Assembly: GCA_964304625.1 (NCBI GenBank)
Contig: OZ199840.1
Span: 10,051,218 to 10,115,019 of the forward strand
DNA from: Kudoa neothunni
Lineage: Eukaryota > Animalia > Cnidaria
Length of the DNA stretch: 63,802 nucleotides
Direction of reading: 5' to 3'
Shown here one piece after another: positions 8,286-15,168 of the stretch; positions within the stretch are counted from its first letter, which is position 1, and every line of letters begins with the position of its first letter. Position numbers and translations under genes: made by a program. Below the pieces are notes generated by a model that did no database searches, was not told the DNA's origin, and worked only from the letters and a program-made list of their open reading frames with translations.

Positions 8286-11200
8286 ATGATGATGATGAGA
8301 TTGTCTTTGAGACAACGATATTTTTCTACAATATATCACGTCATTTTCACTCGTAATTTTCTTTGAGATTACATGCATTAATCATTATTAGTGGTATATG
8401 CGAAAAATGTGATCCCCGATAATATTGATAATAATATAATGAAAGTGAATTTTTCACACGGAAAAAATGAATATCTTATTTCACTTTCTGGATACCATAT
8501 TGAGAATAGCTTCAAACATTGTGCCCTTCAATACTATGGACAAAATAGAGCGAAGATTGACATCTCTACGTGCACCAACGAACCAACTAGAGGAAAAGTG
8601 GATAATACTTCAAAGATGTGTACTTACAAATGTAAAAAAGTTGAATTAAACCTCAGTGGTGAAGATTTTAAAACCATCAAGTATATAAAATGGTGTCAAG
8701 GTAAGAGTGAGAATGATGTGAAAAACTGTCCTATCAGAAGGGTTTTTGTCATAAAAGGTATAGAAACATGTTTGATAATATTTTTATATCATAAAATAGA
8801 TCTTTACATAAAGAGTTCGTTGACGGCAGCAAAAGAAAATAATGCATTGATTGTTTCAGTTCAAAGTAAACAAAGCAGAAAATTAACAGTCAAAGGTTCT
8901 GGTTTAGTGCACAGCCAAGGATCATCCGAAGTCTTTTATTCAGCCAAATCTTTTACATTACCTTCTAAATCTTACCAACCTACGTATTTGGTTGAAATCG
9001 ACAATCGCTCTCCAGAAATTTTATTGAATCCAAAAAATCTCGATGTGTATTGGTTTATTGCAACTGGATCAACAGCAAATAATAAGAATAATTATTATAC
9101 AATTACGCTTCAAAATCCGAAACCTTCGCAAATTTGTTACTTTGGAATAAAAGACATTAATGACTCTCATTTTTCCTCTAATTGCTCAGATATGAATAGA
9201 GCTGGACCCTGTCTTCAGCCTTGCTACAAAGCTACCTTATATCATGAGAAAACTTTGAAATTCGCTCAAGTACTTGTAAAACCTCTTGACAAGATATTAC
9301 CCAAAGAGTTTATTCAAACTATTACATGTAAATTCTAATTATATAATGTTTCTTATCGATTTTATAGTTGTTACCGATCAACCGATTATTACTGATATTG
9401 GAAAGAATAGGGCGACTGTAAATTTAAATGGTTTAAATAATAATGAAGGTGGGAATGGCGTTTCGGGAGATGCAGCTATCGTGGAAATTAAAATAATAGA
9501 GAAAAATCTAGGAATTAAAAATATATGGAAAGATCCTACGTGTAGCGCGGAGTGCAAAACTTTCACATCTGTCAGTTTGAACTCGCTTCTGCCACTAACA
9601 GAATACATTTTAAAAGTAAAAATAAAAGGACTTACAACAATAGATTCTCCTGAAGTTAATTATTATCACCGTTATTTCTATTTTAAAACTAAAGGTAACG
9701 ATAAATATTTACTCTATGCCTAAAGTTTAGAATAGGGGACGACTTAACAAAAACTGGTAGTGTAACGCCAACCATTACTTCTGATCAACATAATAAACTA
9801 TTTCTAAATCTAGCCAATTTATTTTCTGATGAAAAAAGGAATGTTGCAATATGTGATCTCTATTATTCAGTTGCCGAAAGTGATAAACCGATATATCCTG
9901 CTACTTGTGAAGGTGGCGATAAAAAATTTTGTTCTGATACTTGTAATAGAGAGTTCAATATAATAAATCTTGATCCTAAAACAACATACAAAATAACAGT
10001 TTGTCCGAAGGGATATAACTGTGTTGAAAGCGCTGAGGCGTCAAGTAACTTATTAATAAAATGTAATAATAATAATATATTTCAATAGCTACTGGAATCG
10101 AGTTAAAAATAGAAATCTCAAAAAAAAATGATGAAAAGAAAACTATAGCTACATTGACAGCCTCTCCAACTGAAAGTTTGGGATCTTGGACATACATCCT
10201 ACTGGAACAAGGATCTAACAAAATTATCAAGGATTGTTTGAATAGCGAATGCAATCCTGCTGAAACGAGTGGATCTAACACAATAGATTTCTTATGGGAT
10301 TTTCTCAGCGCTGATGTCACATATAAACTAGTTGTTATAAACAAAAATTTCTCTAAACCAAAAGATACAAACCTATATAGTAATTTCTCTTAAACAGAAA
10401 TATTAATTTTATATTTATAGGTGGTATTGATGAAGGTGATAAGAAAATGATTCTATATTACAAGAAATCAGAACAAACGTACAAGATAAAATTCAAAGAC
10501 GATCTAACGAGTAAGGGTGGCAAACAATGCACAGTCAAAAAATCTAATGATGATCTTTTGGGTTATTCTGATGTTAAATTCAGTGGGGTAACGCCAAAAC
10601 AATGCACCGACTTTTCAACAGAATTCGACATTGATCCTAATAGTAAAAATAAACCAAATTATATTTCCATCACTTATCCAGACAAAAAAACTATCCCTGC
10701 GGAAAAGCTCGATAAATCGGGCATTAGGGCAGAAATTATGGCGAAATCTCAAGTACCGAGCGGGGATCAACTATTAGGAAAAAATGGCGACCAAGGGCAA
10801 AAAAAGGGTTTAGTTGGATCACCTTCATCACCTGTATCATTAAAATCTCCAGAACCAATACCAAACAAATCTACAGAGGTCACTTTTAACGTAGGAAAGG
10901 TCTATTCATACTACATAGGTATTATATAATTTCGTTATAATGTTAACCATATTTTCGAAGATCATTTCAAAGAACTTACTCACATAGCTGAATTAAAAGA
11001 CGATAATATAAAATTGGGTTTAAATAAATGTTCATTACAATGTAATGCATATAAGGATACCCAACAACTAACTCTTACGAAGGAAACACATCCTGGCACC
11101 ACTGAATGTGAATTTGAAAGTTATTCGATTCAATTCGATGAGTTAGTAAAAGACTATTATATAAGCTGTCCAAATTATTTTGACTTTCATTATTTCTACG

Positions 11201-14200
11201 ATAATACATTTGTTAAAAACCAAGCCCCAATTTTTAGTAGATTTTATTACGAACTAAAAAATTATGACCAAAAGAAGACATTCACAGTTCAATTGGTCAA
11301 TCCAGAGCCATCCGAAATGTGCACATTCGAATGGATAGACGCCACAGCAGCAAATTCTAACAGCTTTTTTTCTAATGAATGTGATAATATGGAAAACTGT
11401 TTTTTCAGTATGTGCAACAGCTACAAATTTGGAAATTTGCATACGAGTGTAAAGGCGGTCAAAATAAGGGTTCTAAAACTAGGAATGAAACCTACTATCG
11501 GTTATCAAAATAACATATACATATGTACGGTTTAGATTTATTTAATACGCAACATAAAATTTTTTAGTGAAACATGGAGACGATGCTTCTGCGACAACGG
11601 CTGAAACAAACATTAAAATCGATATTAATGGAAAAAATAAAAACGAGAATGGTGAGGAAATTACCCCTCAACCTGCTTCATGCTCTTTAAATTTTTGGAA
11701 CACATACGCTCCGTTAGTTACTGAAACTGGAAGGAAACGTGTGTCTGATCCATCGTCTACTTGCAGCTTTGGGGAGGTTCTAATTACTCCTAACCCAACT
11801 CATTTACATAATGATGTTATGGTAACCATAACGGGCATATCTGATTATTCACCAAAAAAATATTTTTTCCATAAAATAAGTATTTTATAAAATTAAACGT
11901 TATTTTAAATATATTTTCAGCTCAAACCGAAAAACTTTCTATTCCAGATTCTTCATTAGCACCTAAAACTACTGGATTCACAATTACCGGGGATACTGCA
12001 GCATCAACAAAAATTTGTACTATCTACATAAAAGAGAAAAGTGATTTATATTATCCTGCAAATTGTTTTGAAGGGGAGTTGTGTATAAAACCGTGCAACA
12101 CATCGTTCGTCATTACTGGACTTAACTCCGATACTACTTACGATCTCAAAATTGTTCCTAGTGGAAATTATGAAATAAAAACTTTTGGAAACCAAAAAAC
12201 AAGTAACAGCCATTGTTTATATATTTGTTAAATGAATAAATAAGAAATAGATGGTGAAAAAATTGAATTTATAGTTTCAACTAGTTCCAAGAAGAACAAA
12301 CTCATAATACAAATGAAACCATCTAGGATTGACAACAGCGCTACAAACTGTTATTATCAGTTATATAAGCATGAAACAGACGAAAGTAATCGGGTTATAT
12401 TACATTGATTATCTTCAAATAGTGTCACCTACGAGAATAATAAAATCTCGCATTGATTGTAATAATGGCGATGTTAAAAATTGCAATGATATCCATTTTG
12501 ATAATGATATTTACGATAACAAATATAACTACAGGCTGATGATTTACGCGTATGAAAAATCATCAATGTTCAAGCTATCGATACCAGGTAACTTTTACAA
12601 AGAAATTTGAATTGACAAACAATTATAGCTTTTACTCGACGTGGAAAACTTGAGCAGAAGTTGGTAAAATCTTCGGGTGATGATGCTGAAAAATTCTTAA
12701 TTACACTGAGAGATTTTCCTGATACTAACAAGTGTGTAATAAAGATAGTTAATTTTTTAGAGAATGAATATATAAAGCCACAACTTTGCGTAGGTGGAGA
12801 TAACGGTGATTGTTTGGTGGACTGCACCGAAAGTGATATTAACATCGGATATATTAATTCAAAAGTTGATCGATATATATCAGTTTGTTATGACGCAGAC
12901 AAAGAAGAAGCCAAAAATTGTAAAAAGGTTCAAGTATTCCCAATAATAATGAGTAAATAAAAATAATATTTTATTTATAGTGTAAATAATATTTATAGAC
13001 TTTAAACAAAATAATACTTATAAAATATCTTATACTGACGGCAAAGTTAGTGTCTCTTACAAATCAAACTCAATAACTGATTGGAATATACAATATGACG
13101 GAAATGATGATACACATAGTGACACAGTAAAGACCAGCATGGATCTGAAAGCATATTCTGAGACTCTACAAGATAAATCTGCCGCTCTCTCAATTGATAG
13201 ATATATAAGTTATTATAATATCAGTTCAACACTGTTATGGCCTGGAATATTCTATTACATGAATAATACTTATTTGAAATCAGAAATCCCTCTTAAATCT
13301 CAGATCATTTATTCAATTTCAGGCGATGCTAGTAACAATAGAAAACTCAAAATAAAATTCTCTCCTGGACCATATAATGACGAGATTTGTCACATCAAAG
13401 TATTTAAGGTAAGTGGAAGTAACCCAACTCAACAAAGTATTGTTCTGAATGGATGCACCGAGGCGAAAAAAGAGTGTTTCCATCTTTGTCAAGATGGTAT
13501 TATCAGCTTGACAGAAGACATTGAGAACATCGGAATAATTGTTAAACGAAGGTTTGATACCGATGGATTCGAACAATACTTTAAAAGTAGTATTGTATTT
13601 AACTTCAAAAATAATTTCTCATAGGAAATGACACTGGCATAAATGTAAGCGATATTAAGGATACAGAAGTCACTCTTACCGGACTTAACGTCTATAAGGG
13701 TATGAAGACCGGTGGCATTAATGCTGAATGTGTAATTAAAATACGCCGAGAAAATACCTTTTCAACTGAAACAAAAGCTCAGTGTAAGGACGTTGATGAA
13801 TGTAGTACTAGCTGTGAAGAGTCACACATTATTAATCGTCTTTTGGCTGGTACAAATTATGTGGTATCTGTAACGGTAAACAATATTGGAATTAATAACT
13901 ATGTAAAGAAAGCATCATTCCGGACATGTAAAAATTCAAATTAATTCAAATTCAAAAAATATATTTAGCTGGGGGATATGATTTAACTACGAACGATACA
14001 CCACTAAGCAAAAAGAGTTCCACTGCTACAATAACACCATTTGGATCTGAAAATCTTTTGCCGGTCTGCAGAATTTATGTTAAAAAAAGTGGAGCCTCAG
14101 ATCCAAAATATATGGCCACGTGTGATGGAATGGGAACATGCCAGAATAGATGTGATACTAAGTTCAAAATTGTCAACCTAGAATTAGGAGTGACCTACAA

Positions 14201-15168
14201 TGTGATCGTCGAACCATCTGATGGAAAAAAACAAAGGGAGTATTCTGTTAGGACAAGTATTCAGAATAAAAAAGCTTATGTTATAATCATATTATTTAGT
14301 AAATGGTGCTATTTCAATTAAGCATTATTTTGATCGATATAGTGACTTGACATTTGAAGTGGATTTTGAAGGAAAAGATGGAAATTCCAAATGTCCATTT
14401 ATGATTCAGGAAGAAATTGGAGAAAAACAGGAGGGTAAAATTATTACATGGTGTAATGATGATGAAGAATGTTCTACTAATAAATGCATCGTTAATATCA
14501 ATAACTTGTTGAGTGAAAAGGATTATATATTGAAATTGAAGGCAAAAGATCACTCACTCTATAACAAATATAGTATTAAATGTAAATATATGTTTAATTA
14601 TTAAATAATCCTTACTTTCTAATAATATATTTTGCGAAGACTCAAGAATTGGTAAAATGAAAGGGTAATAGAATTCCAGTTATCTATTATATAATAATAA
14701 TTATTTATTTTTAGTAAATTAAATTAAGTAATTTGCGGAAATAAAAATTTATAGAAGGAGAAAACATAAGGAGTGAATATGCCAGCATCGTAATAGAGGA
14801 TATCGTTCAGAAAGTAATACAAATGGTTGAGAACGGGTAAAAACAATTTTTTATGTCATATTTGTAGCATTATATATAGTAAAATTGTTATAATTTAATT
14901 ACCTGAAAAATAACAAAAATTGTAGTTAGTAAAGAAAATCACAACTACGATGCTGCAAAGAATAGTTATTCGTAATTTATATTTATATTTTCGAGTTTGA
15001 CGTTAGATAGGTCTGTTGGAGGTTACATGTAACAGGAAATATATATATTAGTTGTAGATAATCTCTTTTAGATTATATGCAATGATACCCATTGTGGCTT
15101 CACTTTTGGTGGTATTAGGTATAGCTGTTTACAGAAGGAATTCTAAGGACGCTTCTTATGATCTATAA
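8286..15168 (+). CDS. Giant multi-exon type-I membrane protein (~1,950-2,000 aa): three tandem five-exon cassettes of Cys-rich FN3-like modules, stalk, TM helix, short tail
   Basis: Starts MMMMRLSLRQRYFSTIYHVIFTL|VYA (signal-like). About 22 exons splice into one open frame through phase-1 GT-AG introns (e.g. 8353-8391, 8758-8799, 9328-9367, 9695-9735, 10380-10420). Repeated C..C-x5-9-C-x3-C plus L-x-P/x-x-T-x-Y motifs. Ends ILYAMIPIVASLLVVLGIAVY-RRNSKDASYDL*. Confidence 0.85.

Follow-up and report, generated by a model that had tools for sequence, protein, structure and literature searches.

How can an intron be removed when the reading frame demands that the excised stretch begin with GG rather than GT? 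This question is raised by the last part of a large gene in the window, by which we mean the whole stretch of 63,802 nucleotides analysed here (AT-rich, with a GC content of about 29%). The exons at positions 14755-14835 and 14926-14971 have one usable frame each, so that the mRNA must join 14835 to 14926 (...GAG AAC G|TT AGT AAA...), and the intervening 90 nt therefore start with GG and not with GT. In spliceosomal twin introns (stwintrons) of the [D1,2] type, an inner intron lies between the first and the second base of the donor of an outer intron (PMC6616335, PMC12403724). On the evidence of their splice signals, we consider it probable that 14836-14925 and the preceding intron, 14664-14754, are two consecutive [D1,2] stwintrons that would be removed inside-out, in two steps.

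Host gene and layout of the candidate twin introns

The host gene (8286-15168; this and all features described below lie on the forward strand) was delineated from a chain of open reading frames and the introns inferred between them, from weak Pfam matches to fn3 (E 0.002) and from its paralogs, and it appears to encode a large type I membrane protein. Its 5' part encodes many domains, each on one exon of about 100-200 codons, which are fn3-like and have conserved cysteines. Downstream of these domain exons come small exons for a stalk and then a transmembrane exon, and the protein ends in a short tail, with the stop codon at 15166-15168. The ordinary introns of the gene are short, as the 17 that could be placed unambiguously measure 37-58 nt (median 41). 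All 17 start with GT, end with AG and have a TAAT/TAAC-like box 10-16 nt upstream of the AG.

The exon upstream of the first candidate stwintron (14640-14663, 24 nt, phase 1 to 1) has a single open frame across paralogs. The exon between the two candidates (14755-14835, 81 nt) is also symmetric, phase 1 to 1, with a single open frame, which makes its in-frame skipping possible; the corresponding exons of paralogs are 78, 81 or 84 nt long. Downstream of the second candidate, an exon of 46 nt (14926-14971, phase 1 to 2) has a frame that continues into the transmembrane exon. The 100-nt gap between these two (14972-15071) is made up of two mini-introns, 14972-15010 (39 nt) and 15029-15071 (43 nt), around a micro-exon of 18 nt (GTCTGTTGGAGGTTACAT, 15011-15028) that is stop-free and conserved in all paralogs, and the frame is kept with or without its inclusion. 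Translation of the last exon (15072-15168) gives a transmembrane helix and a short cytoplasmic tail.

The 90 nt at 14836-14925 read G|GTAAAAA...TATAG|TAAAAT...TTGTAG. The first base, G14836, is the putative first G of a split outer donor, and GGT is found at this place in 40 of 40 copies of the gene family described below. It is followed by an inner intron of 43 nt (14837-14879; GT at 14837-14838, AG at 14878-14879) with a branch-like TGTAGC/TATAAC box 12-13 nt upstream of the AG, and then by the remaining outer intron (14880-14925; acceptor TTGTAG, AG at 14924-14925), which comes to 47 nt when G14836 is counted. G14836 together with the TAAAAT that starts at 14880 makes a regenerated donor, GTAAAAT. 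This layout agrees in every coordinate with that given in the earlier note, which had also claimed the same design for the preceding intron. That intron, a candidate on grounds of sequence, frames and paralogs, does consist of G14664, an inner intron of 50 nt (14665-14714) and a remainder (14715-14754), and its outer intron measures 41 nt once the donor GTAAATT is regenerated.

The elements of a [D1,2] stwintron are thus found at both positions, namely a complete inner intron after the first G, a regenerated canonical donor (G followed by URNNN) and an outer intron of normal size. The inner units hold a TAAT/TAAC-type box 10-16 nt upstream of the AG, as ordinary introns do, and the outer units hold TAAT, TAAC or CTAAC boxes of their own and end in YAG, with one AAG. 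Within the host gene, only these two introns start with GG and only they have double length. When the two twins are aligned with each other, the similarity is weak (11 of 1000 shuffles score as high; z of 2.6 for the outer halves) and comes mostly from shared signals. This hints at a duplication origin of the pair, short of demonstration.

Joined translations, computed by script, set out the consequences of each way of splicing. The junction G+TT AGT AAA GAA, which had been proposed as an in-frame, phase-1 junction, proved to have the sole frame that continues into the transmembrane exon. At the second twin, plain splicing from GT14837 to AG14925 gives GGT TAG, that is, a stop; removal of the inner intron alone leads to a stop after six more codons, and retention of the whole element reads GGG TAA in frame (14835-14840). 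At the first twin, one-step splicing from GT14665 to AG14754 leads to a stop after 7 further codons, and there is no in-frame alternative in any copy. As GGG TAA stands in frame in the donor region here too (14663-14669), retention of either intron would end the protein just before its membrane anchor. The stops that lie within one to seven codons after one-step GT-AG splicing may permit anchor-less isoforms. Apart from a 93-nt escape at the second twin, available in 24 of the 40 copies, it is the two-step product that restores an open frame at both twins. A micro-exon inside 14837-14925 was rejected, since it would depend on the GT at 14887, the sole one downstream of 14879, which paralogs lack and which leads into the wrong frame, and an upstream donor at GT14826 was ruled out on frame.

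Conservation of the candidate twins in a gene family

We searched the 40.26-Mb assembly (three large contigs and one contig of 18 kb) and obtained at least 38 DNA matches to the C-terminal module of the host gene within its own genome. The family to which the gene belongs comprises at least 40 large fn3-like type I membrane proteins, encoded partly in tandem clusters (G000, C1 339-515 kb and 16.15-16.20 Mb, C2 6.26-6.36 Mb, C3 9.02-9.07 Mb) and partly at scattered loci. No relatives of the last domain exon were found among 1.84 billion protein representatives, in which the only matches were two weak and unrelated ones. By sequence comparison, the family is lineage-specific and looks like a variable surface-protein family.

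The same genome has only three matches to zf-C4 nuclear-receptor zinc fingers, which lie in tandem within 10 kb (G000:C1:10296485-10306767), and no Wnt or nematode cuticle-collagen domains were found in it, both being weak negatives. We take the zinc fingers as a sign of an animal genome. Their small number and the lack of matches to the other two domains suggest a strongly reduced animal gene set. The fourth contig (G000:C4, 18219 nt, loci L029 and L030) has a GC content of 44%, against about 29% in the window, with a cytochrome-b-like (cob-like) open reading frame and few convincing tRNAs. It is probably a divergent mitochondrial genome.

For the comparison of the twin introns, 40 paralogous loci were examined (L001-L028, L031, L038, L040 and L047-L055), with DNA identities from 88% down to about 64%; 34 of them were parsed by script and the remainder were checked by eye. 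The pattern G|GT...YAG|TR...AG, together with a TAAT/TAAC box, is found at both twin positions in all 40 loci, with the outer acceptor of the second twin altered in L018, and both twins are kept in the more distant copy L031. The earlier note had argued that the twin signature is not due to chance and had pointed to paralogs as a place to check its conservation; the recurrence of the design at both positions throughout the family bears this out. Since the 40 copies descend from one ancestral gene, they represent one evolutionary origin and not 40 independent ones.

Twenty-eight distinct sequences were aligned. Of the 10 columns that correspond to the inner YAG and the TA after it, 9 are invariant, whereas the same is true of 8 of the 159 remaining intron columns (Fisher 9e-10; Mann-Whitney 1.5e-6). 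The inner YAG of the second twin does not vary in these 28 sequences, and neither do the branch-box columns A14700 and T14704 in TAAT of the first twin and T14865 in TATAAC/TGTAGC of the second. At non-signal intron positions, the window copy is 46-56% identical to distant copies. The conservation of the internal splice signals in introns that have otherwise drifted indicates purifying selection on them, which by this measure is as strong as that on the outer signals. The regenerated donors of paralogs vary within what a donor tolerates, as the observed set consists of GTAAAT, GTGAAT, GTATAA, GTAATT and GTAACT, with A or G always at position +3 in the parsed copies. Unit sizes across copies are 39-57 nt for the inner and 38-54 nt for the outer introns, beside the 37-58 nt of ordinary ones.

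A strict genome-wide search for the pattern gave 15 matches, against 2 in the control, and all of these except L037 are family members. L037 (G000:C1:3105439-3105518) was rejected as a stwintron, because it is an ordinary intron of 43 nt whose downstream exon opens with TAAAAT, in a gene unrelated to the family that encodes a signal peptide and a Cys-rich domain. TAG|TAAAAT alone is therefore no marker of a stwintron. No resolved twin, in which the inner intron or the whole element had been lost, was present among the 40 loci; a copy resolved in this way would be the DNA footprint of a splicing intermediate. Likewise, no retrocopy with the spliced junction was found in the species' own genome with up to 3 mismatches allowed, and a metagenome scan for this junction gave a sole match, L056, which is alike over the 24-mer only and is regarded as a chance match.

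Two copies carry lesions near the twins. In L018 (G000:C2:986086-987092), AA replaces AG at the outer acceptor of the second stwintron, and L024 (G000:C3:9022193-9023178) has a 1-nt insertion in its 78-nt exon. Pseudogenes or assembly errors are possible explanations in both cases.

Proposed excision and rival readings

On the stwintron reading, the spliceosome, which by intron definition pairs the nearest sites, would take out the 43-nt inner intron (GT14837-AG14879) at the start. G14836 would then adjoin T14880, creating the donor GTAAAAT, and this donor and the acceptor at 14925 would allow removal of the 47-nt outer intron. The net product would join 14835 to 14926, the sole junction from which all family members read on in frame into the transmembrane exon, with the predicted mature sequence GAGAACG|TTAGTAAAG. 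The inner-spliced intermediate expected at the second stwintron is ...GAGAACGG|TAAAATTG..., still with 14880-14925, and that expected at the first is ...AAAGG|TAAATTAA.... We infer both the sequence of these events and the occurrence of an intermediate. With the [D1,2] idea, a single assumption covers why the excised stretch starts with GG and has double length, why an acceptor, a branch box and TR are conserved inside it, and why both halves keep a constant size.

The same frame-required mRNA junction would also result from a single-step, non-canonical GG-AG intron of 90 nt (14836-14925), cut one base upstream of the GT, in which the internal AGTA is idle. We consider this rather unlikely, as it leaves unexplained why the YAG|TR inside the element and its TAAT/TAAC box are conserved like the outer splice sites, why the only introns that start with GG are also the only ones of double length, and why the size of their halves is that of ordinary introns in every copy. 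It is also at odds with the GT start of the 17 other introns of the gene. The conserved AGTA could in principle serve some other intronic function. The anatomy of the element, the logic of its frames and its strong conservation in paralogs speak for the stwintron proposal made in the earlier note, whereas two-step excision is deduced and still faces the one-step intron as its main rival. The earlier note had also named a GT-AG intron of 93 nt (14837-14929) as an alternative, which could arise in one step or after prior removal of GT14879-AG14925. Its junction would be GAGAACGG|TAAAGAA, with an mRNA that encodes ...ENGKENH..., in place of ...ENVSKENH... on the stwintron route. This splice is in frame in the window copy, and the AG that it needs is present in 24 of the 40 copies, so that the alternative is feasible as far as this copy goes. 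However, the AG is missing in the other 16, which keep the rest of the structure, and at the upstream twin (14664-14754) no copy has an in-frame counterpart; the 93-nt intron therefore cannot be the conserved solution. Its length, moreover, is far outside the 37-58 nt that ordinary introns have in this gene. It is distinctly unlikely to be the main route in the window copy, where it may be used for a minor isoform.

A different possibility is that the tail of the gene is mis-modelled or decaying, or that the transcript ends at the in-frame TAA after GGG (14835-14840), which would yield a secreted protein without an anchor. In its favour are the immediate stop upon retention of either twin and two copies that look damaged, L018 (outer acceptor of the second twin lost) and L024 (exon insertion). 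Against this, reading frames stay open and conserved through the 46-nt exon, the micro-exon and the transmembrane exon in nearly all of the 40 copies, which is unexpected if these exons are never translated, and we regard this explanation as very improbable.

Control by the pair of the skipping of the 81-nt exon, or of stalk length, as had been suggested before, is a speculation. A broader and unlikely scheme would be that the spliceosome of this mini-intron genome is limited to about 60 nt per excision, so that longer sequences have to be assembled from 40-nt units that are nested or adjoin each other (stwintrons, micro-exons). The two twins in tandem would then also act as a switch: both steps would give a membrane-anchored variable surface protein, stalling or one-step splicing would lead to the conserved stops and a secreted, anchor-less form, and pairing of the inner donor of the first twin with the inner acceptor of the second would leave out the 81-nt stalk exon without loss of frame. 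A practical consequence is that standard gene-prediction programs, which require GT donors, will cut short or put out of frame all members of this large surface-protein family.

Comparison with known splicing systems

Appendicularian tunicates have non-canonical G*-AG introns that are removed in one step and are not known to have conserved internal splice signals. The Kudoa introns resemble these in their apparent GG-AG boundary and in being mini-introns of a compact animal genome, but differ in that their internal signals are conserved. Recursive splice sites, in turn, have the form AG|GTAAGT and occur in very long introns, and the donor that they regenerate starts at the junction. Successive removal, with a donor regenerated at the first junction, is common to the proposed Kudoa mechanism and to the ratchet points and zero-length exons of Drosophila and vertebrates (reviewed in PMC5126111). 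In contrast to recursive splicing, the regenerated Kudoa donor would owe its G to the sequence 5' of the first cut, the second cut would be shifted by one base in the 5' direction, and the element as a whole measures only 90 nt. The ratchet-point motif, YAG|GTRAGT, is absent, because the internal site is YAG|TA and no copy has a G after the inner AG.

The closest parallel is found in fungi. A fungal stwintron that is spliced alternatively, as [D1,2] or as [A2,3] (Fekete et al. 2017, PMC5587772), shares with the Kudoa twins the overlap of two potential inner introns by one G: the G of the inner acceptor is followed by T, so that a second intron, GT14879-AG14925, overlaps the inner one by this base. 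They differ in that the base after the outer AG in the window copy is A (A14755) or T (T14926) and an acceptor cannot be rebuilt from it. Since this base is not G, the [A2,3] route is closed, in agreement with the earlier note, which had called it unavailable. Among paralogs, the base is A, G or T at the first twin and A or T at the second; where the first has G, as in L006, splicing to an acceptor rebuilt in this way would break the frame. Unlike the fungal case, the second Kudoa twin, and only this one, has an in-frame escape in 24 of 40 copies, through an AG that lies four bases beyond.

The discoverers of stwintrons, who described them in fungi, saw no reason against their presence in other kingdoms (PMC6616335). 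In the literature that we searched, no stwintrons outside fungi were found, and all experimental reports were fungal. If our interpretation is true, the Kudoa introns are a well-conserved pair of animal stwintrons, which extends the phenomenon beyond fungi, and their 40 sequence variants are a natural test bed for splicing that must run inside-out under strict intron definition.

As in the [D1,2] stwintrons of fungi studied by Flipphi, Fekete and co-workers, an inner U2-type intron would split the G and U of the outer donor, and its removal would form a new donor (PMC12403724, PMC9024468, PMC6616335). The two systems are also alike in that both units are short canonical introns and that the frame is restored by inside-out removal alone. 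The fungal stwintrons have been verified by RT-PCR, whereas the Kudoa twins, with units of about 40-50 nt, are candidates from DNA sequence. The host of the latter is an animal, whereas the known [D1,2] stwintrons belong to filamentous fungi. The candidate animal pair is further unusual in that, unlike fungal stwintrons, its members are consecutive and flank one symmetric exon. Finally, where the fungal elements have spread to new positions, the Kudoa twins appear to have been passed on within a family of about 40 genes.
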